Positions 1 to 24,260 of a stretch of 64,000 nucleotides of DNA are shown here, piece by piece (position 1 is the first letter of the stretch; each line of letters opens with the position of its first letter). The notes under the pieces are model-generated. The model was not told the DNA's origin. It did no database searches and saw only the letters and a list, made by a program, of their open reading frames with translations. A program made the translations under genes and the position numbers. The stretch is from Epithemia pelagica (taxonomy: Eukaryota > Protista > Bacillariophyta): NCBI GenBank assembly GCA_946965045.2, contig OX337232.1, positions 2,480,001-2,544,000 of the forward strand. Reading direction: 5' to 3'.

Positions 1-190
1 GTTCCGTACCATTGGAAGTCCTGTTCGTTATCAGGGATTGCCGTTGTGAACCTTGTTACCAAGTTAAGGAAGGATTGGAAGATGGTGGTGGAGGACGCAG
101 CAATTTGGATTACTGGAACGGTCGCTTGAGTGCCATCGACAGTCATGGTGCCGTCGCGAAAGCCGATGTTGTCTTTAAAGACGTAGAAGT

Positions 191-239
<49 letters not shown>

Positions 240-780
240 GGGGGGGGGGGGGCAAGTCTAGTAGATGAAGTAGGCCGCGTCTGTTTTTGATGGCTAGGGC
301 TGGAATTCCTCCAACTACTCCCATGGCCCTGGCATTGGGGTTGTTGCATGCTGGAATGTAAAGCACTAGTTGGTGTGCTCGTGGGTCAGTTGTAGGACTT
401 TGGTGGTTGGTGTTGGAGGCGGATGTTGGTTTTGGGCGGAGGACGATTTGGTCTCCGTGGGCGTCCTCGACAAAGTCGTCGCTGTGATGTTGGTGCCAGC
501 GCTGCAAGACAAAGCGGATGGCTTGGTCTTGGAAGAGCTCGATGTCAAATTATTCATTGGTTAGCGCAGGTTTGAGCGCGAGATGGTAGATACTGCGAAA
601 ATGGCCGGTCCTGTTGGCTGGCTTTTTCGTTTCGATGAATTCAATGCGATGGATGGCTATGGCGAGGGGATTCTCGCCTTGTCGATGCTGGTGATGTTGA
701 AGCGTTGCTTCCAACATGTCTTTCAAGAGCTTGCCGGTGACAGGGGCATGACGATGTTCCTCGTTCTTGGACTCGTGGTG
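1..780 (-). pseudogene. Degenerate coding relic of unknown identity (possibly a retroelement ORF1); runs off the window start
   Basis: One minus-strand frame reads HHESKNEE...ALTNE*FDIELFQDQAIRFVLQRW...RRGLLHLLD/FYVFKDNIGF...DFQWYG, with one TAA (550-552) and a 67-bp insertion whose removal restores the frame. Family not identified. Confidence 0.45.
192..253. repeat. (GA)n + poly-G microsatellite flanked by 5-bp direct repeats AAGTC
   Basis: AAGTC at 187-191 and 254-258 bracket a pure GA-repeat/G-run tract. Confidence 0.9.
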
Positions 781-959
781 GAAATACTACTATAGCTCCT
801 CGGAATGGAAGTAGGATTTTCGTCTAATATAGCCTTATATTGCCCACGACGGCCGCGCTCTCATACGCGAGCAAGTGCGGAGCAAAAAAGGGTAGTGCGG
901 AGCAAAAAAAACAGTCCTGGGAAAATTGTGTGACACTTAATTAGGGGGGGACTCGGAGG

Positions 960-1655
960 TTATAGAAGCAAGCGACATCCCCTCCTGGTCGTGGGGGCAC
1001 TTGTCGGGGCTATTGACTCCTCGGCGGGCAATAGCTCCTCGTCGTGGACCGCCAAATTCGCTGACGCGGATTTAGAAGGCGGTCCACTTCTCGGAGCTAT
1101 TGCCCTTCTCGAAGTCAATAGCCCCTCCTCGTGCCTCCCCACTCCGCGGAGCCGATGTAGATATACGCATGCACATGGAACGGCGGGTTCGGGGTCGTGC
1201 TTCTGTGGCATATAGGAGTAGGGGTTGACTGGTGCCGGTGGCGGTGATTCCGGTTGTCGCTGCGTTGGGGCTGTTGGCTGCGTTGGTGGAATCGTTGGGG
1301 GTGTTGTGTCGTCGGTCTTGCTGTCTTGGGGTCGTTTTTTAGCCGAACGACGTTTCGAACTGCTGCGAGGCATGGTGTGTTTGTTGGTTATAGCGTCAGG
1401 AGAGGTGGACAATTTGGACTGGATTGTTTTTTGTGGGCAGAAAAACAAAGGAAAAACTGGTTGATTGTTGGTCGAAAGATGAATGGGAGGGTTGATGTCA
1501 GAGGGTTCGGTTCGGGTTGAATAGTGTGGAGGAAGCGAAGAGTGGGGAATGGGCTCCCCATTGCGTGCGTCGTTGCGCGGTGGTATCGTGGCCGTGCTGA
1601 TTCGGCCGAAAGGCCACGGTGGCGCTGCCCTGAAACTTGGCACAGGGGAAGCCAT
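960..1655 (-). other. Pro/Thr/Lys-rich ORF, possibly the 5' part of the relic at 1-780
   Basis: MPRSSSKRRSAKKRPQDSKTDDTTPP-type basic low-complexity segment on the same strand; no recognisable domain. Confidence 0.25.
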
Positions 1656-1985
1656 GGTGGCGACAAGGGCAAATGGACAGGTGGAAGGTGTGTAAAGGCC
1701 GGTGGTTCGTAGATAGTATCCTTATGGTCAATTGAACGGGTTCTTGTTTTTTTTTCGGTTCGGCACTTTTTGCTAGCTGGAAGATTCATGGGGTTAGGGT
1801 TAGGAAAAGGGTGAGTATACTCGTAAGAGTGTTGTATGAAGTATTGGTCATTATTGCCCTTTTCCCCAGGTTGAAGAAAACTTGTCTGATAACCTGTTGG
1901 GAGAATTATTCGCTTGTGTCATTTCGAATTTTACGAGTGCGCGGTAGAGAAAGATATTTTTTTTCTGCAAGACAATGGTGACATT

Positions 1986-4589
1986 ATGGTATCCACAGAA
2001 CCAACGGTAACAACTGCGTTGTTCTTTCTCCTCTATTGTTGCTTCTTCCATTGCCAGATTGTGTACTGCAAGGAGGAATGCAGTCTCTGTCGTGATGGAA
2101 GTGATATTCCACTCGATGTAGTTAATGCATCGATCCAGTTGCCTGGATTTGAGACATTGTGAGCACCTGTGGTGAGTTACAAGAGGTTGCTTCGAACAGC
2201 TCCAGTGGTGATTTCCTTTGTACGTCCATTCAATCTATTTCAACGTTGTGTGGCTGCTCGGTCCCTCCCAACGCATGTACACTTTGCCCAGATGGAAGTC
2301 TGGTACCAAATGAGTTCATGGCAACCACCTTGACGGGTAGTGAGGTCGTTCAAGTATTGCCCAATCCATTTCTTCCACGGCAATGTGGCATATTACGAGC
2401 CACGTTACATGCAACAACGAGCAACAGTCAAGCATGTTCTCAAGGCCGTGCGCTTTCACAGCAATGTGGATGTCCAACCGGAAACTCCCACGGCAACGAA
2501 TTGGATCGATCCCCTCGAGACGAGTCACCCGCCATGCAATGTAGTCTTTGTCGCCATGGGGGGTCTATGATTTAACCTGACAAAAATCTTGCGCCCTTCC
2601 TGGCGAGAAACTCGAAATTATTCCGAGATTACCTGCCGACTGGTATCGATGTTCTTGGTGCAATAAGTTGTCAGACGGCTGAAGCACTAATGGTTTCTAC
2701 CTTCTCGGATGAATCAGACGAGTGTCAACTAGCACAGTCACTCTTCGACGGTATTTGCGGCTGTCCGCCTGTAAAAGAAACGGGGTACTGTACTTTCTGT
2801 CCGAATGATGAATATATTCCTGATACCGAAAGAGTCCTCAAGTTCCTGGATTCCCGAGAAGGAGGTCCCTTGCTGACCTGTTCAGAAATGAACTGGACTC
2901 TTACACAAGTAGATCATGGTTCAAACCATTGCTTCCTTTCAAGGAGTTACGGCTTTCTATGTGGCTGCGACGACGGCGAACGATACTATTTCGGAGCGGA
3001 CATTGAATTGAAACGTGCCTTTATCGCATGGATTCCTCGTGTCACTGGATTTTTCAGTATGGTTGGCTCGCTTTGGATTATTTTCACTGTCATGCGAGAT
3101 CGTTCCAAGCGAAACCTGATGTACAATCAACTCATGTTGAACATTAGCTTGTTTGATTGCATCAGCAGTGCGGGTTGGATCTTGAGTACAGCACCGATAC
3201 CAGAATACGAGAACGGAGAACCAACGGGAATTTATGGGGCCATTGGGAATACGGGTACATGCTCCGCACAAGGGTTCATCGTTCAATTTGGTATGATTGG
3301 TTCTGTTACAGTGAGCGCTCTGTTGAGCCTTTATTTTCTTCTGATTATTGTCAAGAGCTACCGCGAGTGGCACTTCAAAGGAATTCGAAAGTGGTTTCAT
3401 GTAACACCATTTGTATTGGCGTTGAGCTGGGCCTTGGCAGGGTTACCCTACTACGACTATGTCTTTCTCCTTTGTCACGTGACTCCCTATCCTGTGGCCG
3501 ACAGTCATGCCCAGTCCATTGTTTTTATCTTAATACCTATCGCATTGTCTTGGCTGGTTTGTTGTTTCAACATGATTTGGATCTATTGGAAGGTCCGTAA
3601 ACAAAGCGTTGCTGCGGAACGTTGGCGAATGATGGGGAGGGGACGAACGCATCTTAGTCATCATCAATCGCAAGACCGTCAATCTTCCGGTACAACAGCA
3701 CAACCTTCCAATTCCTTGTCGCATGCGACCACCGTGGATGAAACCGCCACTCAAACATCCAAAACCTCCTCTAGCATATGCACTTTCTTCTCCTGGCCCT
3801 GTCGATGACATTTGAAGAGTCAGACTACTGGAATCGAGAGGAACGCTATTGCGAGAAGAGGAGCGGCATCCTCCTTGGAACGTGCTGTCATGTGGCAAGC
3901 AACCTTCTATCTTGCCACCTTCTTTTCGACGTGGCCGTTTTATTTTGCTATTACATTGAAACCAACGAATGAAAATTACGGTTTTTGGGTAAGTTCCAGT
4001 TTCACCACCTCTATTGACGTATTTGTCTGGTCTTTCTAATACTCTCCACGATATATCTCAGGTCCTGGTTGTTGTATTCACGCCTCTTCAAGGATTCTTA
4101 AATTTTATTATATACATGCGTCCTCGCTGGGGACAAGCACTGCTCCAACGAAGACAGCGACGTCAACGAGAGTCCAAATCCATGGAAAGTGGAGCGAGTC
4201 AAGCGATGGTGACGTCCAATGTCGATTCGACGACCAAGGGTAGCACTCCTTTTGTCGTTGCTCCGCCTGACGAGAATGGAATGGTAGTAGATTCCGCGCC
4301 TTCTCCGACGCACGAGCAAGTTGATTTGATGGACGAATATGACACGAAACCACCCGAGGCAGCACCGGTCGTTGTCGGAACGCCTCGATCCAACGTCGTC
4401 TCATGGGAGGATGAAGTGGAAGAAGATAGTGAGGAGGGACAGCCGGAACAACAATCGGTTTCCGAAAATGAAGACAACGCTAGGGAAACAAAATATATGG
4501 ACCACGACTTGCCAAACGCTGTTATGGAAGAAAGGCGCAATTCACAAGTCGATGGGAATTTAACGAGTGGTGAACTATGCGAAATTTGA
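1986..4589 (+). pseudogene. 7TM GPCR-like receptor (cAMP-receptor/Git3-like diatom type) with Cys-rich ectodomain repeats, disrupted
   Basis: Signal peptide, repeated CSLC/CTLC/CTFC..CGC modules, TM helices and a PLQGFLNFIIYMRPR TM7 motif; phase-0 intron 3989-4061. Frameshift near 2158, in-frame TAA 2573-2575 and TGA 3806-3808, with the frame continuing past both stops. Confidence 0.8.
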
Positions 4590-15401: not shown

Positions 15402-15883
15402 AATTACTATGGACGATAGATGTTAACTCAATTTTATGTGTTGGACACAGCAGGAACTTCAAGACAACCTCAACAAGCTGCTCTTGTTCATCTACAGAGA
15501 TATTGACACCTCCTACCTTTTCCGGCGTGACAAGATGTGCGGTTTGCCACAAGGTTACGACATACCCCTGTGATCCTACCATGCTGGTTGTTTCTTCCCC
15601 CCAACCAATGAAGTAGAAAACCCTGAGGCTCGGCATCCTGTCCTGTTAGAAGAATCTTTGACCATCCTTCTTGTACTTCTCCTTCTTCTAGTATGGGAGA
15701 GAACCAAGGACTCTATCGATTAATAGAAGTATTAACAAGTAGCAGTAGGTAGTCTGAACATACGAGAAATTCTTGGGTAGACTACTAGAGGTAGAGAGGA
15801 GCTTCCCCTAGCTAACTATCCGTAGCCAGCTATCTCGAAATCGAAGGTAGTCCTTGGATTCCCATGAGATTTGCTTGCCATTC

Positions 15884-18800
15884 CCGACTTTATAGGGGGA
15901 AGTCGCAGAAGAGGAGGGGAAAGAAAGGAAGAGAAAAAAGAAGAAGAAGAAGGAAAAAAGAAAAAAGAGGAAGAATTAGTGGTAAGATTCCCTTTGCTAC
16001 GAACGTGCGATTGCCACCATCATATTATGATCTCATTGGTTGATCCATTTGTCACTGCTTCTGGTCTGTGTGGGATGTGTGGTGACTACGTGTTGCTCCA
16101 ATGTCCCGGTGGAGGGGGATTTGGCAGTTCCCTACGGTCGTTCTACGTATCTGGCTACGGTAAGTGCTGACACCGTGTGTCTTTTACCTATACAAAACAT
16201 CGTCAGCCTCACATATGCCTTTGATCTCTGATTGTATTGCCTGTGCGAAGATATTGGCATACATTGTTTCCAGTATATCGCGCAATCATAGCTACGGCAT
16301 GGACGAGAAGTTTTGCACAGTTTTTGTTAGTTCATTATTTTCTGATCGATGGTTTTCTCACTACTGTTGTTGTTGTCGTCGTTGTTGTTGTTATATCTCT
16401 TGAATCTTTGTCTTAAAGTGTCTGGCCTCCATGGTAAGTCGCGACTGTTGGCTGTTGATGCTGTGTTGATTTTTGCTGCTCTCTAACCGATGTTGTTGTT
16501 GTGTTTTAAGGGTACGATGCATTACTGGGATGGTTGGAACAAGATTTGTCATGGGGTGGGATGCCCCGACGATTGGGCCTCTGCCAATACTGAATATTGC
16601 GGATGCAACAATTTTGAGTCGGTTGTGGATGTGTTGGTTGTTGATGGAGCGGTTGGCAACCAAGGTACGACGAGTAATACGCCGCTTGCTGCAGCAGCTG
16701 TTGCTGAAAGTGATGAACACTAGCAAGCGGCGTATTTGGCGGAAGCAATGGTGGAAGTGATGGCATTTGTGGTTGTGGCATGGTGATTGGTCTGGGGGCC
16801 GGTTGTATTGCTGTTCTTGGTGGCGATTTGGGAGCAGGTTGCTGTTGTGTTTGTGGTGGTGGTCGTTGTGGTCGTGTTGGAGAAGACTGTTGCACTGTTG
16901 GAGCTGGTGGTGGCGGCAGCTCTTCCTCCTCATCACTCAACATTGGATCATCGTCATCTTCTTGGTTTGCTTCGTCTTGATGCTCTTCTTTTTCCTCAAC
17001 TTGTTGCTCTTTTTCATTTTCTCGTGATTGTTCTGTATCTTGTTGTTCCAGTGTCTCGCTTGTTTGCATTGTTTCTTCATCTTGCATATTGCGCTGAGCC
17101 TCACATTTCTCACAGGGACAGAAGTCATGCTGTTGGACCGAGATGTTCCAGACCTCGTTGAGTTGCTCATAAACTTGCAAGTACTCAGAAAAAAAGCGTT
17201 CACCATTGTCTTGCGGTAAGTGCTCGACGTCATCAAACAACTTGGATGCGCCGCATCGAACGGCCAACTTGTTGATAAAGGCAAGTTGCTGGTGGTTCCA
17301 ATGACTCACCACTGTTTCCCACGCCGCAGGCATTTTCTTGTTGCGTTGTTCCGTTGTCTTCGACACAAAGCGCAGCTTGTGTCGAATCTGACGGTTGTAC
17401 CGCGCCGTTCCGCACAAGTTCAAGTCGTCCGAGAGTTTTTCATTTGTGCCCCCATTACTGAAATGGGCCAAGTTGTTGTGCCATGACTCCAATTTGGATT
17501 CCCCTCGGTAAGAGACCCATTCGGACAATTGATGGCTTGAATTTGGGTGTTGTTTGATCTCACGATACATGTCTTCGATTGGAATCGGATCTGCGAGAAA
17601 CTCTGCCTTTTTTTTACAGTTTTCGATCGCTGAGTGTGTATCTTGTGTGAACAATGGTTGTTGTGTCTTGTGATCGAGCCTTCCTCGTGCCGGTGGCCCA
17701 CTGTCACTACTACTTCTCACTTTATATTTTATCTTCCACTCCTCCCGGCGCATCACGATTGTTTGGAACGCGCGGATGATTTTCCGTAAGTACTTGCCGT
17801 ATCTTTCGCGAAAAACCTTGGTCTGTCTCATTTCTGCTATTTGCTTGTCACTACATTTCTTGCCTCCAAGGGTGCCATTCTTCAGGGCCGTGATGACTTT
17901 ATGGAAGTCACCATCGTGATACTCGTAGATGCAATCCAACAATTCGCGCAACGCGTCACCAAAGTCCATGTGTTTATGGCGCAGGGTCTTTATAATTTGC
18001 TGGAGGAAATGAAAGAGTCCCAGTCTTGGGACTACATCTTCACCCAACAATCCAACCCAATAATCGCTCTTGTGGGGGAATGTGTCGGAATAGATGACGC
18101 TCGGGTTAAAATTTCCACGGCTGCAAAGTTGTTGGGCAGCATGGGAGAAGGTCTTGGTTTCCAAGTTTGGAACCAAGATGCACATGCAATCTCGCCTACT
18201 TCATTGGCAGCATCCCATACAGCTTCTGCCTTGAGCCTCTTGGGATAGTTCTTGACTGCTTGGAAGGTGTGGTCTTGGGCAAAACTTGTTTGGCAGCCCA
18301 CTGCTTGGATTTCCCTGGTGTGCCTCTCATAGTCACTTGTTCTCCAGGGATTGAGTCTGGATCTTGATGCCTCGTGGTAGGCCTGTCTGATTGTCTCACC
18401 AAGAGGAGGATACCTGGTGAGCCACTCTCCATCTTTCGCTGGATACTCTTGCCCTTGCTGATGTGTTGCATCACAGAAGGAGTAATAGTTAGTTATTCTA
18501 TTCCTATAATCCCTGTTGATTGCAGCATACAATAGTCCACTACAGTGGTCACCATTGCCATAGGTAAGCATCTCCTCCTCCAACACTGTTGTTGTTGTAA
18601 TGTCGAAGTGCTGGGCACCTCGAGCCCACTTTGCTTCGACCGGATACCATTTCGCAAAATGTGGAGGCAGCGAATTGAGAAGTGCTCCGTCGTTGCCGGC
18701 ATGCGTGGTATTGCACTCCTTGCAATGGTAGTGCGTGACAAGGGCGTAAGACGGTGCGCCATCAAGACCAAAAATGGGGAATAGACTTTTGCTCTTGGAA

Positions 18801-20050
18801 AGGTTGGTCCGCTCGCGTTGTAGTGTACAGTTGCTACACTTTGGACACTTAAGCCCAATTTTCTGAAACTCCACCGGCATAAACAGCTCCCAGTCAACAA
18901 TGTACAAACGTCGCCCTACAATTGAGTCCCACAGGGCATTATTGTTGTTTCGCACGTCGGGTACAGTCAAACACATGTCTCGCATGAACGGCTTAAGTGA
19001 CCGCACGTCGCGCTTCCGTTCCAAACAAGTTTCGGCGATAGTCTTGGCAAGCGCGTACATTGTTTTCGGACACGTGATCGACTCGTCTTGTTCTATCTCC
19101 TTGTATTTAGCCAGTACCGATTGCATAAATACATACTCATCGGACCCAACGGCGGACGTCACCTGATTATTGATCAGGCAGTCCGTGCGCGCAATACAGT
19201 TGCGCTTCCCCTTTCGAACCCTGGAAAGTTTCAAATCGTCCTCTGTCACGGTCGTTGCTTCATTTGAAGCTTCCGAGACAGGTTTATTGTTGAGACGAAA
19301 GAAGAGGTTGAAATCTTCTTGCCTCATGATGATTGGATGGTAAGTCACTTCCTTGTTGGCCTCTTTCTTCAGTCGTTCCTCCTCCTTCATGGCCTCTACC
19401 AAGTGGTCTGGTATGCCCCTGGTCTTTGTGTTCTTCGGGCAGAAGACGTGATGGGGGCGCTTGGGAGGCTTGGTCCCAAGCCTTTTGGAACTGCAGATGG
19501 TGCAGTCCCTGTCTGGCTCAAAGGCCTTTTTTCTTCTCAAGCGTGAGCTGCCTCAACTGCTTTGCCTCTTGTTGCTTCCTCTTCTTGTTGCTTCTCTGTT
19601 GTGCTAACGACTTTGCCCTTTTTGTTTGGTTGTTTCGTCGTTGACTCTGCCCACCCATCTCTTGCTCCTTGCTGAGCTTTTTGTATGGGTTCACCACCAA
19701 GGGTGCTGGTGGTGGTGGAGGAGAGTCATTCTCCTCAGGGACAGTCATCGTGGTTGGGTCCATTGTCGCTCCAGAAACATCGACACCATTGTCCATGTCC
19801 TGGGGCACGGCAACCGCGACCGGCCTCATTGGCACGGAATCGTGTTGGAGACGAAATCCCTGTCGTTTCGGCTGTTTTCGTGGGGAAGTCGGCAAGATTC
19901 CGTGGCTTTTTGCGCGTGGCGCGCGATGTCTACTGGTAAGAGAAGACATGTCTTGTGTGAGTTTTCGTTAAGTATTTTGATGTCTTGTCTATGTCTTGTG
20001 AGTTTTCTAACCCAATCATATTTCTGCCTTCTATTTCGTGAGCCCCGAGG
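15884..20050 (-). mobile_element. Tandem unit 1 (4167 bp) of a putative DDE-type DNA transposon; ORF frameshifted
   Basis: Near-identical to 20051-24217 at constant offset 4167. Two SNPs and two 1-bp indels seen by eye. Confidence 0.85.
16506..19949 (-). pseudogene. Frameshifted copy of the 1147-aa transposase-like ORF
   Basis: Split into three ORFs by +1 T in a T-run near 19527-19532 and -1 T near 18179 relative to copy 2. Confidence 0.8.
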
Positions 20051-20210
20051 CCGACTTTATAGGGGGAAGTCGCAGAAGAGGAGGGGAAAGAAAAGAAGAG
20101 AAAAAAGAAGAAGAAGAAGGAAAAAAGAAAAAAGAGGAAGAATTAGTGGTAAGATTCCCTTTGCTACGAACGTGCGATTGCCACCATCATATTATGATCT
20201 CATTGGTTGA
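20051..20210 (-). promoter_or_regulatory. Candidate promoter at the unit 3' end: CCAAT, CT-rich tract, TATAAA in a 6-bp stem-loop
   Basis: Minus strand has CCAAT (+ attgg 20202-20206), a long polypyrimidine tract and TATAAA (+ tttata 20056-20061), about 107 nt upstream of the copy-1 ATG at 19949. Confidence 0.4.
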
Positions 20211-20672
20211 TCCATTTGTCACTGCTTCTGGTCTGTGTGGGATGTGTGGTGACTACGTGTTGCTCCAATGTCCCGGTGGAGGGGGATTTGGCAGTTCCCT
20301 ACGGTCGTTCTACGTATCTGGCTACGGTAAGTGCTGACACCGTGTGTCTTTTACCTATACAAAACATCGTCAGCCTCACATATGCCTTTGATCTCTGATT
20401 GTATTGCCTGTGCGAAGATATTGGCATACATTGTTTCCAGTATATCGCGCAATCATAGCTACGGCATGGACGAGAAGTTTTGCACAGTTTTTGTTAGTTC
20501 ATTATTTTCTGATCGATGGTTTTCTCACTACTGTTGTTGTTGTCGTCGTTGTTGTTGTTATATCTCTTGAATCTTTGTCTTAAAGTGTCTGGCCTCCATG
20601 GTAAGTCGCGACTGTTGGCTGTTGATGCTGTGTTGATTTTTGCTGCTCTCTAACCGATGTTGTTGTTGTGTT

Positions 20673-23600
20673 TTAAGGGTACGATGCATTACTGGGATGG
20701 TTGGAACAAGATTTGTCATGGGGTGGGATGCCCCGACGATTGGGCCTCTGCCAATACTGAATATTGCGGATGCAACAATTTTGAGTCGGTTGTGGATGTG
20801 TTGGTTGTTGATGGAGCGGTTGGCAACCAAGGTACGACGAGTAATACGCCGCTTGCTGCAGCAGCTGTTGCTGAAAGTGATGAACACTAGCAAGCGGCGT
20901 ATTTGGCGGAAGCAATGGTGGAAGTGATGGCATTTGTGGTTGTGGCATAGTGATTGGTCTGGGGGCCGGTTGTATTGCTGTTCTTGGTGGCGATTTGGGA
21001 GCAGGTTGCTGTTGTGTTTGTGGTGGTGGTCGTTGTGGTCGTGTTGGAGAAGACTGTTGCACTGTTGGAGCTGGTGGTGGCGGCAGCTCTTCCTCCTCAT
21101 CACTCAACATTGGATCATCGTCATCTTCTTGGTTTGCTTCGTCTTGATGCTCTTCTTTTTCCTCAACTTGTTGCTCTTTTTCATTTTCTCGTGATTGTTC
21201 TGTATCTTGTTGTTCCAGTGTCTCGCTTGTTTGCATTGTTTCTTCATCTTGCATATTGCGCTGAGCCTCACATTTCTCACAGGGACAGAAGTCATGCTGT
21301 TGGACCGAGATGTTCCAGACCTCGTTGAGTTGCTCATAAACTTGCAAGTACTCAGAAAAAAAGCGTTCACCATTGTCTTGCGGTAAGTGCTCGACGTCAT
21401 CAAACAACTTGGATGCGCCGCATCGAACGGCCAACTTGTTGATAAAGGCAAGTTGCTGGTGGTTCCAATGACTCACCACTGTTTCCCACGCCGCAGGCAT
21501 TTTCTTGTTGCGTTGTTCCGTTGTCTTCGACACAAAGCGCAGCTTGTGTCGAATCTGACGGTTGTACCGCGCCGTTCCGCACAAGTTCAAGTCGTCCGAG
21601 AGTTTTTCATTTGTGCCCCCATTACTGAAATGGGCCAAGTTGTTGTGCCATGACTCCAATTTGGATTCCCCTCGGTAAGAGACCCATTCGGACAATTGAT
21701 GGCTTGAATTTGGGTGTTGTTTGATCTCACGATACATGTCTTCGATTGGAATCGGATCTGCGAGAAACTCTGCCTTTTTTTTACAGTTTTCGATCGCTGA
21801 GTGTGTATCTTGTGTGAACAATGGTTGTTGTGTCTTGTGATCGAGCCTTCCTCGTGCCGGTGGCCCACTGTCACTACTACTTCTCACTTTATATTTTATC
21901 TTCCACTCCTCCCGGCGCATCACGATTGTTTGGAACGCGCGGATGATTTTCCGTAAGTACTTGCCGTATCTTTCGCGAAAAACCTTGGTCTGTCTCATTT
22001 CTGCTATTTGCTTGTCACTACATTTCTTGCCTCCAAGGGTGCCATTCTTCAGGGCCGTGATGACTTTATGGAAGTCACCATCGTGATACTCGTAGATGCA
22101 ATCCAACAATTCGCGCAACGCGTCACCAAAGTCCATGTGTTTATGGCGCAGGGTCTTTATAATTTGCTGGAGGAAATGAAAGAGTCCCAGTCTTGGGACT
22201 ACATCTTCACCCAACAATCCAACCCAATAATCGCTCTTGTGGGGGAATGTGTCGGAATAGATGACGCTCGGGTTAAAATTTCCACGGCTGCAAAGTTGTT
22301 GGGCAGCATGGGAGAAGGTCTTGGTTTCCAAGTTTGGAACCAAGATTGCACATGCAATCTCGCCTACTTCATTGGCAGCATCCCATACAGCTTCTGCCTT
22401 GAGCCTCTTGGGATAGTTCTTGACTGCTTGGAAGGTGTGGTCTTGGGCAAAACTTGTTTGGCAGCCCACTGCTTGGATTTCCCTGGTGTGCCTCTCATAG
22501 TCACTTGTTCTCCAGGGATTGAGTCTGGATCTTGATGCCTCGTGGTAGGCCTGTCTGATTGTCTCACCAAGAGGAGGATACCTGGTGAGCCACTCTCCAT
22601 CTTTCGCTGGATACTCTTGCCCTTGCTGATGTGTTGCATCACAGAAGGAGTAATAGTTAGTTATTCTATTCCTATAATCCCTGTTGATTGCAGCATACAA
22701 TAGTCCACTACAGTGGTCACCATTGCCATAGGTAAGCATCTCCTCCTCCAACACTGTTGTTGTTGTAATGTCGAAGTGCTGGGCACCTCGAGCCCACTTT
22801 GCTTCGACCGGATACCATTTCGCAAAATGTGGAGGCAGCGAATTGAGAAGTGCTCCGTCGTTGCCGGCATGCGTGGTATTGCACTCCTTGCAATGGTAGT
22901 GCGTGACAAGGGCGTAAGACGGTGCGCCATCAAGACCAAAAATGGGGAATAGACTTTTGCTCTTGGAAAGGTTGGTCCGCTCGCGTTGTAGTGTACAGTT
23001 GCTACACTTTGGACACTTAAGCCCAATTTTCTGAAACTCCACCGGCATAAACAGCTCCCAGTCAACAATGTACAAACGTCGCCCTACAATTGAGTCCCAC
23101 AGGGCATTATTGTTGTTTCGCACGTCGGGTACAGTCAAACACATGTCTCGCATGAACGGCTTAAGTGACCGCACGTCGCGCTTCCGTTCCAAACAAGTTT
23201 CGGCGATAGTCTTGGCAAGCGCGTACATTGTTTTCGGACACGTGATCGACTCGTCTTGTTCTATCTCCTTGTATTTAGCCAGTACCGATTGCATAAATAC
23301 ATACTCATCGGACCCAACGGCGGACGTCACCTGATTATTGATCAGGCAGTCCGTGCGCGCAATACAGTTGCGCTTCCCCTTTCGAACCCTGGAAAGTTTC
23401 AAATCGTCCTCTGTCACGGTCGTTGCTTCATTTGAAGCTTCCGAGACAGGTTTATTGTTGAGACGAAAGAAGAGGTTGAAATCTTCTTGCCTCATGATGA
23501 TTGGATGGTAAGTCACTTCCTTGTTGGCCTCTTTCTTCAGTCGTTCCTCCTCCTTCATGGCCTCTACCAAGTGGTCTGGTATGCCCCTGGTCTTTGTGTT

Positions 23601-24116
23601 CTTCGGGCAGAAGACGTGATGGGGGCGCTTGGGAGGCTTGGTCCCAAGCCTTTTGGAACTGCAGATGGTGCAGTCCCTGTCTGGCTCAAAGGCCTTTTTC
23701 TTCTCAAGCGTGAGCTGCCTCAACTGCTTTGCCTCTTGTTGCTTCCTCTTCTTGTTGCTTCTCTGTTGTGCTAACGACTTTGCCCTTTTTGTTTGGTTGT
23801 TTCGTCGTTGACTCTGCCCACCCATCTCTTGCTCCTTGCTGAGCTTTTTGTATGGGTTCACCACCAAGGGTGCTGGTGGTGGTGGAGGAGAGTCATTCTC
23901 CTCAGGGACAGTCATCGTGGTTGGGTCCATTGTCGCTCCAGAAACATCGACACCATTGTCCATGTCCTGGGGCACGGCAACCGCGACCGGCCTCATTGGC
24001 ACGGAATCGTGTTGGAGACGAAATCCCTGTCGTTTCGGCTGTTTTCGTGGGGAAGTCGGCAAGATTCCGTGGCTTTTTGCGCGTGGCGCGCGATGTCTAC
24101 TGGTAAGAGAAGACAT
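20673..24116 (-). CDS. 1147-aa putative DDE transposase (DUF6729-like Zn domain plus RNase H-like core; Mutator/hAT-like insertion clade)
   Basis: CPKC...YHCKEC Zn domain, QDHTF (D), ANEVGEI, IYSDT (D), RLGLFH, RGESKLESWH (E); N-terminal CxxC..HHxxC and C-terminal CC..H..C Zn motifs. Assigned by motif recall only. Confidence 0.7.
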   Translation of the reverse strand: MSSLTSRHRAPRAKSHGILPTSPRKQPKRQGFRLQHDSVPMRPVAVAVPQDMDNGVDVSGATMDPTTMTVPEENDSPPPPPAPLVVNPYKKLSKEQEMGGQSQRRNNQTKRAKSLAQQRSNKKRKQQEAKQLRQLTLEKKKAFEPDRDCTICSSKRLGTKPPKRPHHVFCPKNTKTRGIPDHLVEAMKEEERLKKEANKEVTYHPIIMRQEDFNLFFRLNNKPVSEASNEATTVTEDDLKLSRVRKGKRNCIARTDCLINNQVTSAVGSDEYVFMQSVLAKYKEIEQDESITCPKTMYALAKTIAETCLERKRDVRSLKPFMRDMCLTVPDVRNNNNALWDSIVGRRLYIVDWELFMPVEFQKIGLKCPKCSNCTLQRERTNLSKSKSLFPIFGLDGAPSYALVTHYHCKECNTTHAGNDGALLNSLPPHFAKWYPVEAKWARGAQHFDITTTTVLEEEMLTYGNGDHCSGLLYAAINRDYRNRITNYYSFCDATHQQGQEYPAKDGEWLTRYPPLGETIRQAYHEASRSRLNPWRTSDYERHTREIQAVGCQTSFAQDHTFQAVKNYPKRLKAEAVWDAANEVGEIACAILVPNLETKTFSHAAQQLCSRGNFNPSVIYSDTFPHKSDYWVGLLGEDVVPRLGLFHFLQQIIKTLRHKHMDFGDALRELLDCIYEYHDGDFHKVITALKNGTLGGKKCSDKQIAEMRQTKVFRERYGKYLRKIIRAFQTIVMRREEWKIKYKVRSSSDSGPPARGRLDHKTQQPLFTQDTHSAIENCKKKAEFLADPIPIEDMYREIKQHPNSSHQLSEWVSYRGESKLESWHNNLAHFSNGGTNEKLSDDLNLCGTARYNRQIRHKLRFVSKTTEQRNKKMPAAWETVVSHWNHQQLAFINKLAVRCGASKLFDDVEHLPQDNGERFFSEYLQVYEQLNEVWNISVQQHDFCPCEKCEAQRNMQDEETMQTSETLEQQDTEQSRENEKEQQVEEKEEHQDEANQEDDDDPMLSDEEEELPPPPAPTVQQSSPTRPQRPPPQTQQQPAPKSPPRTAIQPAPRPITMPQPQMPSLPPLLPPNTPLASVHHFQQQLLQQAAYYSSYLGCQPLHQQPTHPQPTQNCCIRNIQYWQRPNRRGIPPHDKSCSNHPSNASYP

Positions 24117-24229
24117 GTCTTGTGTGAGTTTTCGTTAAGTATTTTGATGTCTTGTCTATGTCTTGTGAGTTTTCTAACCCAATCATATTTCTGCCTTCTA
24201 TTTCGTGAGCCCCGAGGCCCGCCTTTTGC

Positions 24230-24260
24230 ACTCCCTACTCCCTACCCCTACTCCCTACCC
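24230..24260 (-). repeat. G-rich 6-7-mer repeat (GGGTAGGGAGTAGGGGTAGGGAGTAGGG), potential G-quadruplex
   Basis: Five G-tracts of 3 or more separated by 2-4 nt loops. Confidence 0.7.

Follow-up and report, generated by a model that had tools for sequence, protein, structure and literature searches.

A window of 64,000 nucleotides (nt) from the diatom Epithemia pelagica (contig OX337232.1, positions 2,480,001 to 2,544,000, the whole stretch of DNA analysed here) contains two copies of a transposable element joined head to tail at window positions 15884-24217. The pair probably represents DNA transposons of the Dada superfamily, members of a diatom-specific clade, one of which inserted as a newcomer beside a resident copy. 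A first-pass annotation of the window had put the pair forward as its best candidate for an undescribed system. That proposal has to be given up: the absence of terminal inverted repeats, the subterminal repeats, the 6-bp target duplication, the tandem copies spaced by it alone and its one-sided loss are all published for Dada (PMC3706591), and the order of the protein motifs is shared with that superfamily. The element is apparently of a known kind rather than a new system, and what appears to be undescribed is the diatom clade itself, which is absent from the searchable literature.

Alignment of the two units against each other covered 4167 bp at 99.9% identity and placed their junction exactly at 20050/20051 (units 15884-20050 and 20051-24217), which bears out the exact abutment described in the first-pass annotation. 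The 4 sites at which the units differ comprise two G/A transitions and two one-base homopolymer indels. Other copies in the genome match unit positions 3-4163 only, which indicates that the element itself is 4161 bp long (G/A-ACTTTATAGG...GTGAGCCCC) and that 6 bases of each 4167-bp unit are flanking sequence. Alignment of the ends of the genomic copies, suggested earlier as a check, thus did yield fixed boundaries, but these lie at unit positions 3-4163 and are associated with a 6-bp target site duplication (TSD).

With the boundaries placed in this way, we found that the right-hand element (E2) is bracketed by a perfect 6-bp direct repeat, GAGGCC. The outer flanks of the pair, ATTCCC and GAGGCC, have only CC in common, as had been reported, and neither the left-hand element (E1) nor the pair as a whole has a target duplication. 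The earlier statement that no TSD is present consequently holds for E1 and for the pair but not for E2; nor does it hold for the genome at large (G000; 60.5 Mb searched, in 23 contigs), where at least 4 of the 6 flank bases match in 10 of 18 elements. E1 and E2 are 2 substitutions apart, and at least 17 separate them from any other copy; by this measure of sequence distance, they are sister copies. Together, the perfect duplication around E2 and the status of the two as sister copies suggest, as the simplest history, that E1 was the resident and E2 the newcomer.

The transposase and the element ends

The description of both units as transposase-bearing applies fully to E2, which has an intact minus-strand open reading frame (ORF) for a protein of 1147 amino acids (aa), but E1 is frameshifted. 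The 1147-aa protein contains the residues D559, D622 and E821 and, at positions 644-647, the motif GLFH; its N-terminal part has a zinc-binding region and its C-terminal part a CC..H..C cluster. In an alignment of 33 homologs, D622, H647, E821 and H824 are invariant, D559 is conserved in at least 90% and the Cys clusters near both protein termini are conserved. The motif that follows the second aspartate is of the form GxxH (GLFH), not DxxH. We found that the AlphaFold model of the protein is confident over residues 270-975, with a predicted local distance difference test score above 90 in the core, and that its best structural match is ISCth4, a transposase of the IS256 family (Foldseek E 1e-3, probability 1.0; Z 11.9 over 276 residues). 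The next structural matches, with Z of about 9, are the cores of retroviral integrases. Judged from this predicted structure, the window protein is a transposase with a DDE (aspartate-aspartate-glutamate) catalytic triad, of the clade marked by a C/DxxH motif, which reads GLFH in this protein, and by a helical insertion domain.

Both the order of the motifs and their local wording are shared with the protein of Dada-1_CGi (PMC3706591, Dataset S1): LKCPxC...C..C, DxT, YxD, RLxxxHF and RGxxxLESxH. A word search returned 104 homologs, all unnamed except for an 'unknown protein' of the diatom Seminavis robusta, and an exhaustive profile search returned 2564 homolog clusters. No Pfam family exceeded its threshold for the 1147-aa protein. 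The only recurrent Pfam match was DUF6729, found in 6 of the 33 homologs; it was weak, the best score of 26.1 bits lying below the cut-off of 27. DUF6729 proteins, from chordates and basidiomycetes, also make up the nearest clusters in the ESM-Atlas (0.97 for those of chordates), ahead of Mutator-like clusters (0.82), and chordates and basidiomycetes are taxa in which Dada was described. For genome annotation, these results mean that transposases are what 'tandem genes of unknown function' of this kind encode, genes that have no Pfam family and form more than 2500 clusters in public data.

Two other affiliations were considered and set aside. Membership in the Kyakuja-Dileera-Zisupton (KDZ) group was not supported: the sole match, to CxC5, came from 1 of the 33 homologs at E = 0.037 and scored 14.6 bits where the cut-off is 26.9, and the KDZ catalytic domain gave no match. 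Similarly, an assignment to Helitron or Crypton is at odds with the single ORF, which encodes a DDE protein with an RNase-H-like fold and has no Rep, helicase or recombinase match in Pfam.

We found that the termini of the element are not inverted repeats, in agreement with the first-pass annotation: 3 of the terminal 14 bases match between the two ends of the window element, and bases 1-14 give 2-3 matches in each of the subfamilies tested. The further claim that the element lacks terminal inverted repeats (TIRs) is therefore correct for the tips, but a subterminal inverted repeat of 6-9 bp, equidistant from both ends and in register, is present in all four subfamilies. In three of them it reads GCAGAA (nt 20-25), TGGCAG (nt 18-23) and CCAAGGCAG (nt 15-23). 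The CGACTT/AAGTCG stem-loop that had been singled out at one end did not prove to be a feature of the family: it is absent at the ends of the older subfamilies, and one base of the stem is a flank base that varies between copies. The end motifs of the window genome are not conserved in distant metagenome elements, which were located by a different conserved 5' motif.

Stacked copies in the genome and in metagenomes

The genome contains, besides the window pair, seven other full-length copies at 98-99% identity and older subfamilies at about 70% (for copies on contigs C2, C4, C6 and C20, the ends are covered in part only). Stacking of one copy beside another recurs in this genome, in four arrays (contigs C5, C8, C11 and C13) and two mixed-subfamily pairs, and the spacer is 6 nt at all of them. 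Importantly, five tandem pairs contain a member that is followed or preceded, on the side away from its partner, by a second copy of the spacer (Table 1), which indicates an ordinary two-ended insertion, with a 6-bp stagger, beside the end of a resident. Perfect 6-bp duplications were found for window E2, the C13 array, unit 4 of the C8 array, L070, L083 and L119, and L040 has one with a 1-nt offset. The target sites of solo copies share a sequence context: C occupies position -2 in 15 of 19 sites, and 47 of the 57 bases at positions -3 to -1 are pyrimidines (p = 7.5e-7). This context is similar to the element's own end, ...CCCC, and to the CCCCT found at Dada targets in zebrafish. A more extended similarity between the target flanks of solo copies and the right end was rejected, as only the last 3 bases are enriched.

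Three arrays hold more than two units. That on contig C13 consists of five units of the young subfamily (1706279-1731375; L035-L037) with a period of 4955 bp instead of 4167; all of its units share an insert, about 0.8 kb long, at unit position 1644-1648, where a 5-bp overlap suggests the insert's own TSD. The leftmost C13 unit is broken further by another insertion of about 0.8 kb. The array on C8 has four units, and its spacers equal either the right or the left flank; the presence of both types indicates that insertion is possible on either side of a resident. The C11 array comprises four units of an older subfamily (3249945-3283529; L031-L034), and within it a 16.8-kb block, made up of a unit with its insert and a second unit, is duplicated at 99.93% identity. 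The spacers of the C11 array read TTTTAC, which is the right-flank type, and not TTTTGC, the left-flank type. One C11 unit contains an element of 8.4 kb that has direct terminal repeats of 783 bp and is probably a long terminal repeat retrotransposon. Together, the insertion shared by the C13 units and the duplicated block in C11 indicate that arrays, once paired, grow by unequal recombination.

Pairs can also join different subfamilies. At two loci, a young copy is followed directly on its right by a member of a third, more distant subfamily (L040 436-4894, C7:2190436-; L041 242-2109, C5:1434242-), which is about 4.46 kb long and has the left end GAAAATGGGGGGGG and the 9-bp subterminal repeat CCAAGGCAG. 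The C5 copy of this subfamily is interrupted after about 1.9 kb. Pairs of this mixed kind rule out simple tandem duplication as the route by which stacking generally arises. In the pairs L006 and L008 the left-hand members have no TSD, as is the case for window E1.

We found the same arrangement in a metagenome set of 80 microbial-mat contigs that carry diatom relatives at 35-46% identity, with a common 5' subterminal motif (GGCAG..AT.TGATTGG) located 18 nt from the tip. Upstream sequence is present for 70 distinct 5' ends, and 19 of these have another element's 3' end directly before them. The spacer at these junctions is exactly 6 nt in 19 of 19 cases and the orientation is always the same; no inverted neighbours occur among the 70 ends. 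In two microbial-mat assemblies the same element, together with the 6-nt sequence TCAGCC, is found with and without a stacked neighbour (L068 1-210 versus L069 1-806): starting at the spacer, the contigs share 99.96% identity, and the sequence upstream is the end of another (third) element in one and unrelated DNA in the other. These contigs likely represent a presence/absence polymorphism of a stacked insertion, and they lend further support to the formation of pairs by insertion. A further contig (L095, Ga0163144_10130403, 3815 bp) is one element long, and the 164 nt with which it begins are found again, 98% identical, at its end beyond a 6-nt junction; the contig represents either two copies in tandem that differ slightly or a circular form.

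Table 1. Features of the window pair, and spacers duplicated on the far side of one member of a pair. Positions are those of the window unless a locus is named.
Feature	Position or locus	Strand	Remark
Left flank ATTCCC	15880..15885	.	not a copy of GAGGCC
E1, left element, 4161 bp	15886..20046	-	read as the resident
E1 transposase ORF pieces	16506-18185, 18032-19540, 19518-19949	-	gene broken by two 1-nt homopolymer indels
Subterminal repeat GCAGAA	E1 15905..15910; E2 20072-20077	+	nt 20-25 from the left end
Inverted partner TTCTGC	E1 20022..20027; E2 24189-24194	+	nt 20-25 from the right end
Spacer GAGGCC	20047..20052	.	left copy of the E2 target duplication
E2, right element, 4161 bp	20053..24213	-	read as the newcomer; GAGGCC on both sides
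Dada-like DDE transposase gene	20673..24116	-	intact, 1147 aa
Right copy of the E2 6-bp duplication, GAGGCC	24214..24219	.	
Spacer duplication GAGGCC	window E2		
Spacer duplication TATTGC	L040, third-subfamily element		offset by 1 nt at the right end
Spacer duplication GTGAGT	C8, unit 4		
Spacer duplication TGAGAA	L070		
Spacer duplication TGCACG	L054		if the 3' tail exceeds that of relatives by about 7 nt

The genes neighbouring the window pair, both on the plus strand, encode a DEAD-box helicase and a PUB-domain protein, which identifies the host as a eukaryote. These eukaryotic neighbours, the named homolog from the diatom Seminavis and a fold nearest to that of an IS256-family transposase uphold the view of the first-pass annotation that this is a eukaryotic DDE element. 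Within the units, the stretch of about 620 nt past the stop codon (15886-16505 and 20053-20672), which includes a purine-rich AAG tract, has 70-79% identity between subfamilies, and the C-terminal coding part beside this 3' untranslated stretch (unit positions ~730-1294) is not alignable between them. About four copies of a short repeat, ACTCCCT, lie at window positions 24230-24260, 11 nt to the right of the pair.

Formation of the pairs

Each element carries a single intron-less gene for a DDE transposase. The catalytic domain of the predicted structure has an RNase-H-like fold into which a helical domain is inserted, an arrangement known from IS256 and Mutator enzymes. We propose the following course of events. 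The enzyme would presumably read the 6-9 bp subterminal motif that lies about 15-25 nt from each tip. Insertion would proceed through a 6-bp staggered cut, giving rise to the 6-bp duplication, and would occur preferably after a C-rich triplet. The right end, ...CCCC, together with its flank would resemble such a C-rich target, and the left duplicated copy would retain the original upstream context; new copies could then land, in fixed orientation, in the six bases adjoining a resident. In the window, E1 would have arrived first and E2 would then have inserted into GAGGCC beside the right end of E1, and the larger arrays elsewhere would have grown later by unequal recombination between units. 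Mimicry of the target by the resident's end would be the reason for this targeting. The authors of the Dada study had proposed such recognition by the transposase for RNA-gene targets in which the subterminal motif is present (PMC3706591), and our data on the diatom elements suggest that one and the same surface of the enzyme reads both the target and the element's own end. If true, this would explain TIR-less tandem arrays in gene-dense algal genomes.

Several observations weigh against reading the pair as Dada elements stacked by insertion. No E-value links the protein to a published Dada transposase, as the word searches gave only the diatom clade and the profile search only close kin; membership at the level of sequence therefore rests on motif correspondence. 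Dada elements target multicopy small-RNA genes (PMC3706591). At 17 insertion loci (about 134 kb, both strands), Rfam gave no match at the gathering score, and it gave none at E up to 0.1 in window positions 10-30 kb; no separate tRNA scan was made for either set. No empty allele of the site was found, both flanks of the pair being single-copy in the assembly. In addition, a TSD is lacking in about 40% of the elements of the window genome, E1 included, and in most complete metagenome elements; given the frequency of missing duplications, aberrant or one-ended events, or later rearrangements, must be common. Finally, recognition of a resident end as target by the transposase is something that we infer from frequency: stacking, at about 1 in 4, is too common for a 3-nt target motif alone.

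The left (3') end poses a further difficulty, as the two bases that touch it mismatch about half of the time, a pattern for which the simple model has no explanation. Among the solo copies, the duplication matches by position in 10, 10, 9, 8, 5 and 5 of 10 cases, and the two bases at the left end vary between copies that are only 7-15 substitutions apart (solos L003, L005, L007, L009, L012 and L013). One speculation is that they are donor-flank or untemplated bases kept on the non-transferred strand. The third variable base is mostly G and heritable, which indicates that it belongs to the element. We rejected the idea that the 3 variable left-end bases represent the spacer of a donor circle junction, as 2 of 8 matched the flanks of other copies, near chance. 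Similarly, a 4-bp TSD with 2 extra bases was dropped as an explanation, as the arrays and several solo copies show perfect 6-bp duplications.

The resemblance of the window protein to ISCth4, whose fold is the closest one solved, raises the question of whether the pairs arise instead by the copy-out/paste-in route that this enzyme uses. In such a pathway, the 3'-OH of one end would attack 6 nt outside the other end. The product would be a circle if both ends belong to the same element and a dimer if the second belongs to a sister or neighbouring copy, and head-to-tail pairs would then be products or intermediates of the circle-junction type. ISCth4 joins ends to each other over a spacer of 6-8 bp that derives from either flank, and works best with 6 bp, and IS256 forms both tandem dimers and circles (PMC7780238). 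The diatom spacers, always 6 nt and equal to the right or left flank (C8), are in keeping with this pathway, as are the left-hand members that lack any TSD (window E1, L006, L008) and the terminal redundancy of 164 nt over a 6-nt junction in the one-unit contig L095. We nevertheless consider copy-out unlikely as the source of the pairs. The spacer has the length of the TSD, and the far-side duplication seen in five pairs is not predicted by end-to-flank transfer; moreover, most pairs join diverged subfamilies and hence are not dimers of one element. The first-pass annotation had suggested a circular or copy-out intermediate, but with perfect 6-bp duplications, spacer included, in five tandem pairs, nothing requires a circle. 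Only chromosomal junctions are visible in the data, and no circle was observed. The similarity in fold leaves the pathway open, since eukaryotic Mutator-type relatives of IS256 are cut-and-paste elements. We know of no eukaryotic DDE transposon for which copy-out/paste-in has been demonstrated. By analogy, one could also suppose that Dada-type transposases in general work like IS256 and ISCth4, by an asymmetric strand transfer that connects one end to a point 6 nt outside another, with 6-nt head-to-tail junctions that are or mimic the reactive circle-junction substrate of copy-out/paste-in; this seems to us quite unlikely.

The near identity of E1 and E2, each other's closest relatives, and the CC at both borders of the repeat unit (15884-15885 and 20051-20052) would fit an origin in which a solo copy was duplicated in tandem by a route independent of transposase, such as unequal sister-chromatid exchange, replication slippage or microhomology-mediated repair via CC. 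The C13 and C11 arrays clearly did grow by duplication of whole units, foreign insertions included. As an origin of the window pair, however, such duplication would need chance breakpoints within 2 and 4 nt of the element ends, and it cannot make mixed-subfamily pairs at the identical 6-nt spacing, so that we regard it as improbable. For C11, exchange between flanking repeats would have left the left-flank sequence TTTTGC in the spacers, which instead read TTTTAC. From this spacer type and the mixed-subfamily pairs, we reject unequal exchange between flanking repeats as the source of the first dimers. An assembly error in which one copy was written twice might be suspected from the 99.9% identity of the units and from the fact that two of the four differences are homopolymer lengths typical of long-read errors. 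It is very improbable, however, given the two substitutions between the units and the arrays of diverged units at three other loci and in independent metagenome assemblies.

Comparison with known transposon systems

Dada elements (Kojima & Jurka 2013, PMC3706591) encode a DDE transposase of about 1000 aa that has a DxxH motif, an N-terminal Cys cluster and a C-terminal CCHC finger and is weakly related to integrases and Mu. Their ends lack TIRs and carry 7-9 bp subterminal inverted repeats, with TSDs of 6-7 bp, and the zebrafish target context is C-rich (CCCCT, then GCGAAx; PMC3706591). Tandem copies, even of two different families, are spaced only by the 6-nt TSD (Fig. S3), in many copies, such as those of Dada-tL_DR, one side has no TSD, which was attributed tentatively to one-ended events, and the superfamily is known from stramenopiles (Ectocarpus) (PMC3706591). 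The diatom elements resemble Dada in protein, ends and arrangement. Their transposase has the DDE residues, with the second D followed by an xxxH motif, and Cys-rich clusters at both termini, that at the C terminus being of CCHC type; their ends have no TIRs but equidistant subterminal inverted repeats, a 6-bp TSD and a C-rich target context; and their copies, including those of different subfamilies, lie head to tail at the spacing of a 6-nt TSD, with one-sided loss of the TSD.

There are also differences. The diatom elements have GxxH in place of DxxH, and their stacking is far commoner, involving about 27% of ends in the metagenome contigs and arrays of up to 5 units. Furthermore, no small-RNA gene is present at the scanned loci, and the preferred 'gene-like' target seems to be the end of another copy; the diatom clade has apparently swapped small-RNA-gene targeting for inserting beside its own kind. 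Dada is among the least studied superfamilies of DNA transposons, and the diatom clade offers intact, recently active copies with clean ends, as well as a quantitative signature: a 6-bp duplication, a fixed orientation and about one quarter of insertions exactly beside another copy.

The IS256 family, with ISCth4, is the one whose structure the catalytic and insertion domains match best (Z 11.9), and it shares the 6-bp junction spacers and the tandem dimers. IS256 is bacterial, however, with TIRs, a TSD of 8-9 bp and a spacer unlike the TSD in length and origin, whereas the diatom element has no TIRs and a 6-bp TSD, and its pairs carry true TSDs. We therefore did not assign the element to the IS256 family. 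Mutator-like elements (MULEs) belong, as does the diatom transposase, to the DDE clade in which a C/DxxH motif goes together with an inserted helical domain, but the diatom protein matches no MULE model in Pfam. MULEs have long TIRs and TSDs of 8-10 bp. IS30 and IS21 target the ends of resident copies and insert beside them, forming head-to-tail (IS)2 dimers with a spacer of a few bp that serve as hyper-reactive intermediates. The diatom elements are like them in inserting adjacent to a resident end, but the transposases of IS30 and IS21 are bacterial, act on elements with TIRs and are unrelated to the diatom enzyme.

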